NCBI GenBank assembly: GCA_016748015.1
Contig: JAAOMT010000518.1
Span: 186,001 to 250,000, forward strand
Direction: 5' to 3'
DNA length: 64,000 bases
DNA from: Geosiphon pyriformis uo1
Lineage: Eukaryota; Fungi; Glomeromycota
The notes beneath the pieces were generated by a model that saw nothing but the letters and a program-made list of their open reading frames with translations, did no database searches and was not told the DNA's origin. Numbering within the stretch: the stretch's first letter is position 1; every line of letters begins with the position of its first letter. The position numbers and the translations under genes are program-made. Positions 33,165 through 39,330 of this stretch are shown here, piece by piece.

Positions 33165-35447
33165 ATGCCCTCTCTTCAGTTGAATCCTCCAAGTGAACTA
33201 GGCTGCCCCATACCTGCTAATACGCCGCATGCCATTTCCGTTACATTACCCACTTGGAAAGATAATGTTGATTATGAGGAAGGTTGTGAGCGTGTGCTAA
33301 GTCGCATGTCAAGTGGTTATCCGAGATTTTTTATCCACAACTATATCAAAAAGGTTCGAAAAGGGCTTTATGTTTTTGTTTTTGGGCTCGTCATTTTAGG
33401 GATGAATGTCGAATTTCAAGAAAAAAACTTCTAATAATCAAATCAATATATTGATCGATGCTAATTGATGATTGTTTTTTCCTTTTTCCTTAGCTAATGG
33501 CACATTGTGAACAAAAGTTCGCAAAAGTCACTGAAACCTGTCTCCTATTTCCGTCTCGAAAAGTGGCCCAAAGATGCCGTGATTATCTGAAACAATATTA
33601 TACATCGAATCAAATGTCATCATCTTTTGGAAATTCAGTTAATGTGTCACGTCTTGCAGAATTTACGGTACTTGCACCTACTGTTGAGCATAGAGACAGA
33701 TCATTGCCCGGGGCTGTTACACTTTACGTTGTAATGTTTCCTAAGGACGCTTTTCCTATTGCTCAATCGTTTTGGCAACATACTGGTGAGGGAATATCAT
33801 CTCGTCTGGCAGAATATGTGCTTCGTTTGCTCGAAACTAAAAAGCACGAAGAACAAATTCATAAAGAATTGATTAATCAAAGATCTCCATTTCGGAAACA
33901 TTATTCTAATTCTCGAATTCCAACTGCTGTCACGCTTCAGAATTGTTCAGATTCATCCAGCAATTCTATAACCGCTCTTAACTCCCGCTGTGATGAGAAT
34001 GGAGACCTTATAGAAAATGCAAATTTTGAGGAGAATTCATATGTTGAGGAGCGATATGGTCGTAATCTTTCAATTGGGTTTGCTGATAAAGCAAAGATTG
34101 TATTGAAACGTCGAATTGCTGGTGTATTAGGCGTGGAGGATGTTGTAGAAGACTTAGAGGATATCGCATTAAAGAACATTGAAAACCAATCTGAACGTGA
34201 TGTTTTTGGAGTTTCAGAGGATGATGTATATCTTTATCCATGTGGGATGAGTTCGATCTTTCATGCTCATCGATGCTTACTTGCCTCTTTTACAGCTAAC
34301 AAGAGTGTTTGTTTTGGGTAAGTGAATTTATTTCATTTCATCAAATTACTCATTTTCCTTTTTGATCTATCACATTATTTTGTCCTTTTACGATTTTCAA
34401 ATTCAGATTATATTTCATTTGATAGTTTTCCTTATGTTGATACTTTGAAAATTTTGCAAAAATTTGGACCTGGCTGCCACTTCTTTGGCCATGGTTCTAG
34501 CACGGACATTGACGCACTTGAAGATTTGCTCCATTCAGGCGAAAAAATACTGGGTCTATTTTGTGAATTTCCTTCAAATCCTTTATGTAAATCTCCCGAT
34601 TTAAAACGTTTACGGACTTTGGCAGATCGATATGATTTTTTAATTGTGGTGGATGAGACTATTGGCAATTTTGTTAATGTTAAAGTTTTAGAATGGGCAG
34701 ATATGATTGTTACTAGCCTTACAAAAATTTTTAGTGGAGATTCTAATGTTATGGGAGGAGGGTAGGTATCATTCAAGGTTTTATTAAAATTTTCACATCC
34801 ATCAAGTTGGATCATCATTTTTCATAAACACCATCCTATTTTAAGATTAATATTAAATCCTCAACGACGGCATTACAAGAAACTAAAGGAGACCTTGAAA
34901 CTGGAATACGAAGATCTTTTTTGGGCTGAAGATGTGATATTTTTGGAGCGAAATTCTCGTACATTTCGAGAGCGTATCGCGAAAATAAATGCGAATGCCG
35001 AAAGTTTATGTGACTTTTTGTGTAAGAGTCCCAAAGGTTAGTCAAAACGGTTAAAAAATTTGAAGAAATCGCATTGTGAAATAATAAGCATATTGACTTA
35101 TTTCTATTTCAGTTAAGAAAATCTATTATCCAAAACTCATAACTTCAGAAATTTATTCACAATATATGAGGACGAAAGGCAGCTATGGGGGCTTATTTTC
35201 TGTTACTTTTCATAATGATCTCGCCTCTCAACAATTCTTTGATGCTCTTCCAATTGCAAAGGGACCATCACTTGGCACCAATTTCACCTTAGCATGCCCA
35301 TACACGATCTTAGCCCATTATATGGAACTAGATTGGGCTGCTAAATTCGGTATTGAAAAAGGACTTATTCGAGTGAGTGTGGGATTAGAAGACAAAGAGA
35401 AACTGCTTGCAACATTTCAAACTGGCTTAGATGCTATCAAAATTTAA
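33165..35447 (+). CDS. Cystathionine gamma-synthase (Str2/Met-7 type), multi-exon
   Basis: [63 protein letters not shown] (PLP lysine), [23 protein letters not shown]. Confidence 0.93.
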
Positions 35448-35770
35448 AAAGGATAATGAAGTATCCGAATCGAGAACATTCTGGAAAATTATTATTATAA
35501 CAAATTGTAATAGCTTGGTTTTGCCGTGATTCCGGACGATTAAACCTTTATTATTCCAAATAATATTGAATCGAAGATTTTTAAAACACGATTCGATCGA
35601 TTGTTCTATAACATAAAATGGGAAAATTTCGCTTGTGCAATGGCAACTGTCACGTGATATTTTTCATTATTGTGCGAGCTTTTGTAATTGTACTTAAATG
35701 GAGTACGATATGAAGTTATGAAATGCTCATCATAATAATTACAACCTACAACAGGGAAACAAATTAGCTG

Positions 35771-35863
35771 CGGATCAGGTTTAAAACCACCATCAGCGGA
35801 TGGATTATAATACATCAATAACACGCAATACTAACCATTGCTATGTAACGCCTATCATTTCCT
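35771..35863 (-). ncRNA. Candidate omega-RNA scaffold / element right end
   Basis: After re-inversion it directly follows the RuvC coding end (stop TGA at 35815). Three short hairpins: GCAAT/ATTGC (35825-35841), CCATC/GATGG (35790-35803), GGTTT/AAACC (35778-35788). Location expected for TnpB/Fanzor guide scaffolds. Confidence 0.45.
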
Positions 35864-36459
35864 GCATCACTGGGACCAAGGTTCCTCCGGGAAACCCAAA
35901 CGGATGGCTCTGTTCATGCAGTCTCCAGTGATCCCGGCGTCCGTACACCTTTTAAATACTTTCCCATGAAAGGTGTAGGCAAGATTGGCATTCTATTAGA
36001 CTTATGGCTCGCGCTTGCAAGTGCTTGGACGATCTCACCTCCGAAAAGGAGAACTTAAGAATAAAATGGCCAGATGATTTTTCGGATGCGGGGAAAAGCT
36101 ATACAATTCTAAAGTAAAAATTCACCAGGAATCGATTAGATTCTTTACCCGCGAATTCATTCCTCCTTTTGAAGTGTCGGACATGGTGAATCGCAAGACA
36201 AGAAAAATTACCCGAAAAACTGTCCGGAAAATGCTTTGTTCGGCCATTATTCCTGTCGATAACTTCTGATCAGCAAGGCCGAGAAATTAGGTCGTGTTAT
36301 TATTCGGAACGAAGCTTCAACATCCAAAACTTGTAGTCAATGTAGCAAAATCTAAAGAATCGAAGGGTTTGAAGCGTAAAACGGCCGGAACTGTGGGATT
36401 GTGATAAATAGAGATGAAAATGGCGTTCGAGAGATCTTCCTCCGGGCATTACTTGATGC
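35864..36459 (+). pseudogene. Fanzor2/TnpB RuvC-zinc-finger half, inverted relative to the rest of the gene
   Basis: VSSDPGVRTPF (RuvC-I D at 35930), IPPFEVSDMVNRKTRKITRKTVRKML, RNEASTSKTCSQC (shifted RuvC-II E at 36311, typical of Fanzor2), GRNCGIVINRDENGVREIFLRALLD (RuvC-III D at 36413). Confidence 0.9.
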
Positions 36460-37200
36460 TGTTTTTGTGTCTGGTATACCCAGATAAATTTCCACTCATT
36501 AGTTTTGCGATAGTAGGTGAGCTTGCCATCCAACATTATCTCGGGAGGAACGGGGCACCCATTATTATGCCTCTTTTTTTTGAAATTAAGGGGTAATAAA
36601 GCACGCATGTCATTATCCAAAATAGTGGTAGGCTTATAACGATGTGTAGTAAGCATCGACGGATTACAAAGATGAATGATATAGAAACATTCAATGTGGA
36701 TTTTGGAAACTTCTAGCACAAGTTGTCATTGTTTGTCACAAATTTTTCTAGATTGAGTGTGCTAATAGACCTTGCCGATTCGGATTACGCCTAATTACTT
36801 CTTCCCTAGCAAGGAATGTTTGATCGATTGCCTGATCGATAATATTCGCAGGCGCCTCCGAAGCAACAGTCTGAGAACACAGAACAGTTCGTATGAAATT
36901 GCGCTCGCCCCATATTAGCTATTTGGAGTTTCTTGTCTTCGTGCTCATTACCTCTTTTCCTGCCCGAACATTTGTGTAAAGCTCAAGTTTATCTTTGATG
37001 GGTTGAGGCTTTACCCAACCCTGTTTTGATTGATCGATATGGAAATTTTTGTACAAAAGCGCGATGTTGACAACAGTATTGGTAATGTTGTCAAGCCCAA
37101 CCACCGCTTCAAGGGCTGCTTTGAGGATGGTTCGGATACACCTTGATTGACAGTGTACAGTTGAGAGTATCTTCCATCTTCTGACATTCGCGACGAGCTA
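36460..37200 (-). pseudogene. Fanzor2/TnpB N-terminal half (HTH/REC/WED region)
   Basis: IKVYPNHPQ..LKRWLGL..HYNTVVN (HTH_OrfB-like KIRIYP..Q..L..W.G..R..YN), EAPANIIDQAID, PPEIMLDGKLTYYRKTNEWKFIWVY; disrupted by stops and frameshifts. Confidence 0.7.
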
Positions 37201-37545
37201 CTTTCGCTTTTCCCTTACGCTTTTCCTCTGTTCTAACGCTATCGTCAATGGGGAGCAGCTCTCCTTCCCCGTATGCGACAAATAAAGACCGTGTTAATGG
37301 TAAGAATTAATGTCTTATAAGAGTTCATGCTCTTCAGAGGTTGCATTGTTGAAGAGAATCAGAATGAAGGAAAAAGATGTATTAGAAAAGTCAATCACTG
37401 TGGATGACCAGAATTTCTGGCACCATTCCGCGGCTTGTTCGTTCGAAAAGGAGTTGCTTTTTGTTGCTCGAAATCCTTCTTTTACTGCGCACTAGAGACA
37501 CGGATATAATCTTATTATCAGAGGTGGTGGGAATGGTATCAGCAT
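37200..37545 (-). pseudogene. IS607-family TnpA serine recombinase remnant
   Basis: YIRVSSAQ*KKDFEQQ (37508-37461; catalytic YxRVS motif), LFERTSRGMVPEILVIHSD*L, EHELL*D and INTVFICRIRGRRAA (about 37298-37254), in collinear order with frameshifts and deletions. Confidence 0.8.
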
Positions 37546-37992
37546 TTTGAAACGTTTAGCTCAGGTGAGAAGGTATTTATTTTCGCGATTTTGAACCTGA
37601 TAAGCATTACTAAGCGACTAATTATTGATAGGCATTTATAAGCAAATTTTTTTGCTGTTTACTTTTACCTGGAATGAGTTACTTACAAGAGCAAGTCAAT
37701 CATCACTAAATCACATCACAAGCACATCAATTCTCAAAAACGTTGAATGGTTCAGCGCAGAAGCAAAATTCAACTACCACTAAAACGGTGTACGAAATTA
37801 GCACCCTAAAAAAGCACCTCAAAAAGGTGGGTTTCCCTTCAATAAGTTCCCTCTCAAACTGGTCGTCACTCTGCTCCGCACGCGCTCTAATAACTTACAC
37901 AAAGACTCGAAAATTTTCTCCACATTGGTCTCATCTCTTCTATATACTTTTACCGACACACAGACTCTTTATAAAACCTTACTTTTAATATA

Positions 37993-39330
<1,338 letters not shown>

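Follow-up and report, generated by a model that had tools for sequence, protein, structure and literature searches.

A decayed IS607-type transposon copy with an inverted Fanzor2-type nuclease module in an apparently fungal chromosome

A 1,858-bp segment (35798–37655, sense on the minus strand) of the window, i.e. the whole 64,000-nucleotide stretch of Geosiphon pyriformis DNA analysed here, was identified as a single copy of an IS607-type element, with a serine-recombinase TnpA and a TnpB/Fanzor2 nuclease. We consider it, with a probability of about 90%, to be the dead remains of one IS607-type DNA transposon in a eukaryotic genome, with its nuclease module inverted, and a member of an old, decayed family. 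The homology, anatomy, inversion and decay of the relic, and its family of copies, are shown by the results below. The copy contains at least 21 stops besides frameshifts and the inversion, and is today without coding function. It is flanked by a Cys/Met PLP-enzyme gene on one side and a UBC-type E2 gene on the other. Elements of this kind have been described already (Bao & Jurka 2013; Yoon 2023; Jiang 2023), and the relic adds one member.

The first-pass annotation had placed a relic pairing a serine-recombinase TnpA with a Fanzor-type TnpB at 35771–37650, hidden from the ORF track in gene-dense eukaryotic surroundings. Every motif that it cited was found at the position given, the nuclease showed DPG and the shifted glutamate, the longest ORF was of at most 141 codons, the flanks carried spliced genes, and the ends now put at 35798 and 37655 lie close to those it gave. 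The features of the relic are listed in Table 1.

Table 1. Positions of the parts and motifs of the relic within the window
Feature	Position	Strand	Remark
IS607-type serine recombinase TnpA remnant, catalytic domain only	37250–37545	-	interrupted by stops and frameshifts
YIRVSS	37491–37508	-	TnpA catalytic motif
ERTSRGMV	37421–37444	-	TnpA remnant motif
INTVFICR..GRRAA	37275–37298	-	TnpA remnant motif
Fanzor2/TnpB, N-terminal two thirds	36459–37451	-	codons ~2–351 of the 567-codon family frame; at least 13 stops
Basic NLS-like stretch	37178–37225	-	N-terminal nuclease part
IKVYP	37133–37147	-	N-terminal nuclease part
LKRWLG	37095–37112	-	REC-like middle comes next
Inverted nuclease block	35885–36458	+	codons 352 to ~562; at least 8 stops
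RuvC-I DPGVRT	35930–35947	+	inverted block; context SSDPGVRT
PPFEVS	36162–36179	+	inverted block
RuvC-II alternative glutamate, NEASTSKTC	36308–36334	+	inverted block
Zinc ribbon, CSQC and RNCG	36332–36343 and 36386–36397	+	one of four Cys lost
RuvC-III NRDENG	36407–36424	+	inverted block
Left end (LE)	37546–37655	-	alignments of 8 + 13 sibling ends
Right end (RE)	35798–35884	-	alignment of 15 sibling ends

In a six-frame HMM search, PF07282 (Cas12f1-like TNB / OrfB Zn ribbon) was matched by 36245–36436 (plus strand), with a score of 42.1 bits (E = 1.2e-8) that exceeds the curated cut-off; the match contains three TAA codons. The recombinase remnant of the window was too decayed to give an HMM match. 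When the stop-free pieces of the window were searched one by one against Pfam and NCBIfam, only a 30-aa and a 35-aa zinc-ribbon piece scored (23.9 and 13.2 bits), and peptides for TnpA or for the nuclease N-terminus had no score at all. Since the window peptides were nearly without HMM signal, the identification was mostly drawn from the sibling copies and one intact relative, the 647-aa protein P0006. By tblastn, P0006 residues 360–427 aligned to 36686–36471 on the minus strand (52 bits, E = 1.6e-9) and residues 432–644 to 35885–36469 on the plus strand (summed E ~1e-25), with no further match within the 64-kb window. The N-terminal nuclease part was placed by the majority-frame ruler laid on the window, by the P0006 tblastn and by an alignment of sibling pieces (A4).

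Coordinates were taken from a majority-rule reading built on 29 copies, which also served for one blastp. This reading gave one 567-codon nuclease frame (~520 codons when counted from the first Met), starting at consensus position 295, in which a basic NLS-like stretch, IKVYP..LKRW.G..RF.YN, RuvC-I DPG, QNEAYTSKTC, a C4 zinc ribbon and DRDENG followed each other from N- to C-terminus. Introns in the family nuclease gene were considered and rejected, the majority reading being one continuous frame. A single alignment of 79 tiling pieces (A1) had collapsed to 372 columns, and blocks were aligned separately (A2–A4 and A6). The TnpB/Fanzor motif D-x(125-275)-[TS][TS]-x-x-C4-x(5-50)-RD (Bao & Jurka 2013, PMC3627910) fitted the majority frame as D366...TS515..C..RD545, with DPGVRT, TSKTCSQC and NRDENG as the counterparts in the window.

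Fanzors are marked by DPG in RuvC-I and by an alternative glutamate (Ealt) six residues upstream of the zinc finger, with no canonical glutamate ~50 residues upstream (Yoon et al. 2023, PMC10711439). Both fingerprints were present in the family (AVSIDPGVRT and QNEAYTSKTC). At the site of the canonical glutamate (Ecan) the family reads PPFEVSDM, aligned with GKLNVKSI of mimivirus L79, and in the HMM alignment the E of PPFEVSDM falls two positions before the canonical E of Cas12f; judged from these alignments, the family nuclease probably lacks Ecan. Among the top 150 representatives, 79 of the 86 full-length proteins carry DPG plus Ealt. A profile of natural sibling pieces searched against PDB matched 9b0l_P (mimivirus 'TnpB-like protein L79', a Fanzor2) at 83.7 bits (E = 1.3e-22), Cas12f at 57 bits and ISDra2 TnpB at 19.6 bits, a ranking of Fanzor2 over IS605 TnpB and Cas12 that covers the C-terminal 148 residues only. 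QNEAYTSKTC was placed on NEYLTTKTC in the 9b0l_P alignment, and a single piece (L006) gave this L79 structure 46.2 versus 32 bits. The RuvC-I/linker (REC) profile (A3) and an N-terminal piece (L035) had no match in PDB.

The recombinase half was recognized through the siblings. The window TnpA DNA was 72–82% identical to sibling regions (L025 and L027 included), the best of which scored 80.9 bits with NF033518 (IS607 transposase model) over profile positions 51–184; pieces of L025 and L027 matched positions 50–74, 89–142 and 127–184, and the model had 37 matches across the genome. Direct tblastn of sibling TnpA pieces on the window gave weak scores of 27–31 bits. In collinear siblings and in the majority reading, TnpA frames at consensus ~130–700 overlap the 567-codon nuclease frame. 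The same tnpA-before-tnpB order was found in the window on the minus strand, ahead of the inversion point, and the 3' part of the TnpA remnant overlaps the start of the nuclease frame.

In IS607 TnpA, an N-terminal MerR/winged-helix DNA-binding domain precedes the catalytic domain (Chen et al. 2018, PMC6188088). All family matches began at profile position ~48–54, and since similarity starts only at about position 50, this domain is absent; the element had been proposed to derive from a complete autonomous one, a claim that does not agree with a family TnpA of this form. Only ~125 nt separate the left terminus from the start of the catalytic domain in the family, and this stretch was not alignable to the HTH-coding DNA of a divergent copy (L093, C658) extending over NF033518 positions 14–142. 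Such a domain defines functional IS607 transposases, and its absence speaks against the reading given here, which does not account for the amplification of the family. On an improbable reading, the spread of a family with an HTH-less TnpA to at least 40 loci would imply trans mobilisation by a rarer full-length lineage (C658-type) or a new recognition of the ends.

IS607 elements have neither terminal inverted repeats (TIR) nor target-site duplications (TSD), and carry an imperfect subterminal inverted repeat and the same dinucleotide (GG in studied elements) at both junctions (PMC6188088). Alignments of sibling ends showed no TIR and no TSD, and the flanks were unrelated. The LE terminus was GATGAAAAGATTTGCT in siblings and a degenerate GCAAAAAAATTTGCT in the window, and a subterminal TGCCTATCAATAA motif lay within LE; LE pieces occurred in 38 places of the genome at 78–100% identity. 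The RE comprised the last few nuclease codons and a non-coding stretch of ~70 nt whose last letters are AATCCATCC, with a flanking G at 35797, and held a decayed form of the family's subterminal hairpin (AATAATAGGC...GCCTATTATT). TGCCTAT(C/T)A motifs were present at both element ends in the sibling alignments. An imperfect inverted match of 20 nt (75%; repeat I4) joined 37626–37645 in LE to 35838–35857 in RE, at unequal offsets of ~10 nt from LE and ~40 nt from RE. At the LE junction, CC was followed by GATGAAAAG in most copies (counted flanks: CC in ~5 of 12, CT in 3; the copies are decayed), and at the RE junction AATCCATCC was followed by G or A, a pattern in decayed copies that is consistent with a crossover at CC (GG on the other strand).

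By analogy with active elements, the RE is the place where an omega/reRNA scaffold would end. An omega-RNA had been claimed as part of the system, and none could be demonstrated: Rfam gave no match in the element at E <= 1, the RNAalifold consensus of 10 right ends was weak (-6 kcal/mol, practically no covariation), and the folds of single RE copies were mixed (z from -0.5 to -3.8) with a recurring 10-bp hairpin. Dead copies are unable to reveal selection on RNA base pairs.

Compared with ~28 collinear siblings, 574 bp of the window copy (35885–36458) were inverted, clean to 0–1 nt and carrying RuvC-I, the alternative glutamate, the zinc ribbon and RuvC-III. In the sibling alignments this block was always opposite in strand to both neighbours, with junctions at the identical nucleotide, so that an inversion guessed beforehand at 35864–36459 was confirmed and its interval made exact. 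A flipped nuclease module was found in 3 of 31 copies (the window copy, C784 and C661), the three inversions being clean, nested and different in extent, and no inversion of TnpA or of the N-terminal half was found among the 31. At the breakpoints of the window copy and of L020, another copy with an inversion, there were no inverted repeats and no shared motif, only the 0–1 nt overlap. An origin of the inversion by the serine recombinase was considered, and no matching CC/GG pair was present at the two breakpoints.

Two other explanations of the strand change were weighed. The region is repetitive, with at least 40 loci at ~80% identity, and an assembly error at a locus truly collinear with its siblings might produce the same arrangement. 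Short-read Logan contigs from two runs covered both junctions without a mismatch: in run X1, record 1 (11.4 kb) covered 35000–36188 and record 3 covered 36175–36528, and in run X2, record 10 crossed both. These contigs and the assembly derive from one sample, so the read support comes solely from the assembly's own source; they are nevertheless independent contigs, siblings at 80% identity could not give perfect-match chimeras, and inversions occur also in L020 and L045. An artefact is therefore very unlikely. The plus-strand RuvC block and the minus-strand block of TnpA and nuclease N-terminus might instead be two copies, or members of two families, that landed head-to-head; convergent coding blocks by themselves are compatible with two fragments, and nested, fragmented copies (e.g. 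L045) occur in this genome. The blocks are, however, complementary to the nucleotide, codon 351 joining codon 352 at 36458/35885 with zero sequence lost or duplicated at the block borders, and the right-end segment 35884–35798 resumes the original orientation exactly at block end 36458. Both blocks also come from one DNA family and have diverged to a similar degree, and the probability of a head-to-head landing is close to negligible beside that of an inversion within one copy.

The family occupied at least 40 loci in the 128-Mb genome. DNA searches returned 121 pieces in 40 scored loci, with long matches at 68–81% identity and short end pieces at up to 94%; pairwise identity had a median of 80% and a maximum of 85%. 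Single copies lay 9–13.5% from the majority sequence, and the window copy 11.9%. The substitution spectrum was one of GC-to-AT decay, with 45% GC in the majority sequence versus ~35% in the surroundings. RIP-like mutation was rejected, C>T being not raised at CpA (0.103) and mildly raised at CpG (0.168 versus 0.120). Intact siblings had been proposed as a possible new nuclease, and there were none among the 68 PF07282 zinc-ribbon matches counted genome-wide, the 37 TnpA matches and the 40 DNA loci; the largest open frames were of 183 codons at the 68 zinc-ribbon matches and of 201 codons at NF038280 matches. The family is old and dead, no scored copy in the genome being intact. Viral hallmark genes were not seen in the loci read.

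The closest intact relatives were metagenomic: P0006, on a Logan SRR15128685 contig, and P0155 (648 aa), on an ENA ERZ27397459 contig, with 50.5% and 45.6% identity to the majority reading over ~545 residues. In a tree of 146 columns, whose deep forks were without resolution, both formed a clade with the family (99 SH-aLRT), outside a mostly bacterial clade. They share with it HTH_OrfB_IS605 plus the TNB zinc ribbon, PPF..S.M, QNEAYT.KTC and a ...LRALLDGALVL tail, but are intact and have ~110 additional N-terminal residues; no IS607 TnpA was called alongside them on their short contigs. Among the bacterial or viral relatives fetched, the gene directly before that of TnpB encoded an IS607 TnpA in 86 of 112.

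Such relatives bear on whether the sequence might be bacterial (a contaminant or a very recent prokaryotic IS607 transfer) or part of an integrated giant virus. Relatives from bacterial MAGs (Synergistota, Planctomycetota, Chloroflexota and Cyanobacteriota) and from large viral contigs are ~50% identical in their C-terminal region, and sibling TnpA pieces scored highest against viral contigs, which makes a viral route of entry plausible. On the other hand, both ends of the element adjoin spliced host genes, the at least 40 loci are spread over many large contigs with shared ends and differing flanks, decay runs towards the AT-rich composition of the host, and the family forms a clade of its own with P0006 and P0155; a foreign sequence is accordingly extremely unlikely. 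The flanking genes encode a kinesin, the Cys/Met PLP enzyme and the UBC-type E2, with GT..AG introns visible in contigs; the DNA thus shows the host to be a eukaryote with spliced genes. The E2 cDNA begins (~37678) only ~20 bp beyond the left end, and the relic might have been co-opted as a promoter or non-coding RNA region of this gene, in which case its persistence would not be purely neutral. In run X2, where the neighbouring genes are seen spliced, contigs run through the relic without a mismatch, among them one with a 103-nt skip (36109–36211; GT..AG, minus strand). Against this, X2 is RNA or DNA by guess only, no contig of the RNA-like run X3 matches the interior of the relic perfectly, and the 11.9% divergence matches that of other copies, so that no extra constraint is visible. 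Co-option is unlikely, though less so than a foreign origin, and a neutrally decaying eukaryotic transposon copy is the reading that we prefer.

With its mode of action taken from established IS607/TnpB biology, the ancestor would have been an element of ~2.0–2.1 kb encoding on one strand a short serine-recombinase TnpA and then an overlapping Fanzor2-type RNA-guided nuclease. The recombinase would have mobilized the element in double-stranded form, through crossover between matching dinucleotides and without duplication of the target, and the nuclease, with a guide from a right-end RNA, would re-cut emptied sites; transposition chemistry, guide RNA and past nuclease activity are thus proposed for the family by analogy. 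A single ancient amplification to at least 40 loci was followed by neutral decay, and in the window copy a clean 574-bp inversion of exactly the nuclease module (codons 352 to ~562) came after insertion.

Annotation gains an account of a 1.9-kb ORF-less stretch together with its repeat family. The relic adds a decayed cellular, apparently fungal, IS607/Fanzor2 family to elements whose known hosts have so far chiefly been giant viruses, amoebae, algae and molluscs, and it gives a dated view of such a family, as one old burst and then neutral decay from GC to AT. The window copy itself is of no use for tool discovery, but it leads to P0006 and P0155 as assayable intact relatives, for which the left flanks of the family would predict a TAM ending in CC. 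How such elements spread and die in eukaryotes is a question on which both the shortened TnpA and the repeated clean inversions in the nuclease part bear. It is improbable, if somewhat less so than an assembly artefact, that a specific process of RuvC-region inversion, combined with trans mobilisation or a new end recognition of the HTH-less TnpA, marks a distinct eukaryotic Fanzor2 lineage; if true, such a lineage would be worth nuclease testing, given the intact 647-aa metagenomic relatives. An inversion process in the RuvC region could be recombinase-mediated or an outcome of self-targeting repair.

Eukaryotes and giant viruses have IS607-like elements that encode Fanzor2 proteins (PMC3627910; PMC10530073). 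Mimivirus L79/ISvMimi_1, i.e. ApmFNuc (Fanzor2), resembles the family in an upstream TnpA overlapping the nuclease on one strand, RuvC-I DPG, the shifted glutamate (six residues ahead of the zinc finger), a zinc ribbon of the C4 type, RD(E)NG, a length class of ~520 aa (majority reading for the family), the absence of TIR and TSD and a basic N-terminal stretch (cf. the NLS region of L79). It was the best match of the family among solved structures (9b0l), with the similarity visible in the C-terminal 148 residues. Unlike the L79 systems, the relic is dead and rearranged, and the old family from which it comes occupies at least 40 loci of a cellular genome and has a TnpA devoid of the N-terminal DNA-binding domain; ~70 nt separate ORF and RE in the family, versus ~200 nt of conserved non-coding sequence for ApmFNuc (PMC10530073). 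Prokaryotic IS607 TnpBs with Ealt and DPG, mostly cyanobacterial, have been named pro-Fanzors (Yoon et al. 2023, PMC10711439), and ISXfa1 is a studied IS607 TnpB (Chen et al. 2018, PMC6188088). The family agrees with these in gene order, RuvC fingerprints, subterminal repeats, an imperfect inverted repeat that lies closer to one end than to the other and apparently one dinucleotide at both junctions (CC in the decayed copies of the family, GG on the other strand). In contrast to them, the relic is lodged between spliced genes of a eukaryotic chromosome, its family has an N-terminally truncated TnpA and falls outside the mostly bacterial clade (146 columns), and the family nuclease is longer, of ~520 aa and with an NLS-like extension, versus ~390–430 aa for pro-Fanzors.

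The locus is a dead, newly found member of an already described group, the IS607/Fanzor2 elements: IS607-like elements with Fanzor2 were described in eukaryotes and their viruses in 2013 (PMC3627910), and their RNA-guided nuclease activity, NLS and evolution in 2023 (PMC10530073, PMC10711439). All peptides cited in the first-pass annotation were present in a six-frame reading (see table), and, as it had stated, no single ORF reveals the element, none in the region exceeding 141 codons. GC content of the relic region was 40–44% versus 33–37% in its surroundings. Searched in six frames, the entire 128-Mb genome yielded 68 matches to PF07282 (Cas12f1-like TNB, OrfB zinc ribbon); the one in the window (36245–36436, plus strand, 42.1 bits, E 1.2e-8) had three TAA within it. 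In tblastn, residues 360–427 of P0006, an intact metagenomic relative of 647 aa, aligned to 36686–36471 (minus) and residues 432–644 to 35885–36469 (plus), with a summed E of about 1e-25 and no further alignment within the 64-kb window. These matches exceed chance. Searched singly, the window's own peptides matched almost nothing in Pfam or NCBIfam, so the identification rests mostly on relatives. The proposed relic of an IS607-type recombinase and a Fanzor-type nuclease was borne out by the PF07282 match, the P0006 alignments, the siblings' matches to NF033518 (IS607 family transposase, NCBIfam), and DPG with the alternative RuvC-II glutamate (Ealt).

Features of the relic, its family and the neighbouring genes (window positions; ^, element boundary)
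Feature	Sequence	Position	Strand	Basis
TnpA peptide	YIRVSS	37491–37508	minus	six-frame reading
TnpA peptide	ERTSRGMV	37421–37444	minus	six-frame reading
TnpA peptide	INTVFICR	37275–37298	minus	six-frame reading
Nuclease N-terminus	IKVYP	37133–37147	minus	six-frame reading
Nuclease N-terminus	LKRWLG	37095–37112	minus	six-frame reading
Nuclease block	DPGVRT	35930–35947	plus	six-frame reading
Nuclease block	NEASTSKTC	36308–36334	plus	six-frame reading
Nuclease block	NRDENG	36407–36424	plus	six-frame reading
Left end	...CC^GATGAAAAGATTTGCTTAATAATGCCTATCAATAA...	37655		sibling end alignment
Right end	...TTGCCTATTATTGATGTGTTACAATCCATCC^G/A	35798		sibling end alignment
Family motif (basic, NLS-like stretch)	EKRKGKA.AAR.KRQK
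Family motif	RTLLIKVYPNHPQKQLLKRWLGLTRFAYN
Family motif	AVSIDPGVRTPFTWYSP
Family motif	IIPPFEVSDMVNRKTRKITRKTVRKMLCWAHYRFRQRLI.KAEELG.RVIIQNEAYTSKTCSQCGNIQRIGGSEVYNCRNCGIVIDRDENGARGIFLRALLDG
Kinesin-14-like gene		within window
Cys/Met PLP-enzyme gene		ends 35447
UBC-type E2 gene		cDNA 5′ end about 37678; ATG 37993

With 35600–37800 as DNA query, the genome gave 167 first-look candidates, of which 40 loci were scored, with 121 pieces at 68–81% identity over long matches; relics of this kind proved common in genome-wide searches. In about 28 siblings fetched and aligned, block 35885–36458 was opposite in strand to 36458–37450 and 35797–35885, and the junctions mapped to the same sibling nucleotide, indicating that the siblings are collinear (TnpA, nuclease N-terminus, RuvC, right end). 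The inversion in the window copy was clean (574 bp, 0–1 nt ambiguity, nothing lost) and comprised codons 352 to about 562 of the family frame, the whole RuvC/zinc-ribbon module. Both junctions were matched perfectly by Logan contigs of two source-sample runs, which are independent of the assembler, not of the sample. The strand reversal against siblings and these contigs confirmed the inverted nuclease block that had been proposed. Two other copies carried different inversions in the same, RuvC-coding half: a clean one in L020 (G000:C784:796678-800727, locus 2090–2547), nested inside the window's inverted interval, and a 96-bp inverted piece in L045 (G000:C661:365100-367600, locus 658–753) with deletions on either side. 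Neither a repeat nor a common motif was found at the breakpoints. Three clean inversions, all in the nuclease half, are a modest point beyond routine. Two further loci, L046 (G000:C649:448658-450857) and L047 (G000:C783:1089-4466), had identical scores and ORFs, flanks included, and one sits at a contig end; this looks like a contig overlap or assembly duplication, not two insertions.

The termini were defined by aligning sibling ends, 15 on the right and 8+13 on the left, which gave the window copy a length of 1,858 bp. The alignments revealed neither a terminal inverted repeat nor a target duplication; an imperfect 20-nt inverted match lay at unequal distance from each end, and TGCCTAT(C/T)A motifs were repeated at both ends, all as described for IS607 elements (PMC6188088; PMC10711439). 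IS607 elements recombine at a GG dinucleotide, CC on the opposite strand (same references), and most of the decayed copies had CC at both junctions, which may mark such a crossover. An 18-nt, 83% inverted match (repeat I3) between 35769–35786, in the host flank just beyond the right end, and 37589–37606, inside the left end, could be fortuitous or a remnant of the end of some other copy.

The majority-rule sequence of 29 aligned copies, which served as a coordinate ruler only, contained a single frame of 567 codons, in which the first Met is at 46, KVYP at 112, DPG at 366, TSKTC at 515 and RDENG at 545. This indicates that the ancestral gene lacked introns and had about 520 codons. Family motifs were taken from alignments of natural, unaltered sibling pieces. 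The family's RuvC-I has DPG, and a glutamate precedes the zinc finger by six residues; these are the two fingerprints of Fanzors and “pro-Fanzor” TnpB kin (Yoon et al., PMC10711439). The best solved relative of the C-terminal block profile was 9b0l (83.7 bits, E 1.3e-22, 148 residues), the mimivirus “TnpB-like protein L79”, a structurally solved Fanzor2; Cas12f scored 57 bits and ISDra2 TnpB 19.6. The RuvC-I/linker block and an N-terminal piece had no PDB match. A second, distinct Fanzor-like lineage (L052, G000:C701:384126-387536; L053, G000:C404:444173-447583) had no TnpA upstream and a better kept C-terminus, with a 95-codon open piece (...SEAYTSKTCSQC...IDRDVNGARGIFLRALLNGC); it was likewise broken by frameshifts and AT-rich insertions.

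The C-terminal profile found 10,682 proteins among 1.84 billion representatives, and DPG and Ealt occurred together in 79 of the 86 full-length proteins among the best 150. The nearest intact proteins were metagenomic, P0006 and P0155 (648 aa), which across some 545 residues shared 50.5% and 45.6% identity, respectively, with the family's majority reading. Each had HTH_OrfB_IS605 and a zinc ribbon; no TnpA was called beside them on their short contigs. The link to these intact relatives also goes modestly beyond routine. Relatives in bacterial genomes and IMG/VR contigs had about 40–53% identity over the last 148 residues, and an IS607-type TnpA lay directly upstream in 86 of 112 such loci. 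In a tree of 146 columns, the family pieces formed one clade (95), sister to P0006/P0155 (99), both within an unresolved comb with viral-contig lineages and outside a mostly bacterial clade. The tree agrees with a Fanzor2 assignment and leaves the family's source undecided. The best “bacterial” matches were on short MAG contigs (L094 and L095 are goat-rumen Synergistaceae MAG contigs), and Clostridia MAG contig CALVHV010000159.1 (L107) was identical to a 131-kb viral contig (L175, IMGVR_UViG_3300045988_177042) over the compared 148 residues; some such bins may contain viral or eukaryotic DNA.

NF033518 had 37 matches genome-wide in six frames (top 80.9 bits over profile 51–184), and sibling pieces matched it at 50–74, 89–142 and 127–184. 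The sibling on contig C531 still reads ...FYARVSSAKQKEDLERQK / ...GSGINFKRSEFKTILERTSRGMVSEIVV..., of which the window's ERTSRGMVPEILV and INTVFICR..GRRAA are decayed counterparts (72–82% DNA identity). TnpA similarity in the main family always started at around position 50 of the profile. No more than about 125 nt lie between that point and the left terminus, and no alignment was obtained between this stretch and the HTH-coding DNA of L093, a divergent IS607/Fanzor2 copy on C658 (G000:C658:234500-239500, piece 1753–2328). The main family's TnpA thus lacked the N-terminal DNA-binding domain, which functional IS607 transposases need (PMC6188088), and the first-pass reading of a complete autonomous element was not supported. 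This truncation is another modest addition to the routine. The TnpA frame of L093 still includes the N-terminal HTH/wing (profile 14–142, ...GKIATKTSPSGTLRY...), and this copy could represent the lineage that provided a full transposase.

An omega-RNA was likewise not shown: Rfam gave no match for a guide RNA, and ten right ends gave a weak consensus structure (−6 kcal/mol) without covariation, dead copies being unable to reveal compensatory change. Single-copy folds had z-scores of −0.5 to −3.8 and shared a 10-bp hairpin (AATAATAGGC...GCCTATTATT) just within the right end. The inversion in the window copy parts the ORF 3′ end from the right end.

Copies diverged from the majority sequence by 9–13.5% (window copy, 11.9%), and pairwise identity was 80% at the median and at most 85%, a pattern that indicates a single, old burst. 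C>T changes (0.13 per base) and G>A changes (0.11) predominated, the reverse changes standing at 0.04. Substitutions were slightly enriched at CpG and not at CpA, so RIP was rejected in favour of ordinary AT-biased decay. The window copy is interrupted by frameshifts and by no fewer than 21 in-frame stops, and the suggested intact siblings were not found, there being no open frame above 201 codons around any HMM match in the genome.

The host is a eukaryote, and GT..AG introns of the kinesin-14-like, PLP-enzyme and E2 genes were visible in contigs. The E2 cDNA contig began only about 20 bp beyond the element's left end (region 37655–37993), indicating that the E2 promoter region overlaps the relic. 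Source-sample run X2 was RNA-seq-like, with GT..AG skips in neighbour genes, and gave perfect contigs across the relic (35833–37533), one of which omitted 36109–36211, a piece with minus-strand GT..AG ends; the relic may be traversed by a spliced, non-coding minus-strand transcript.
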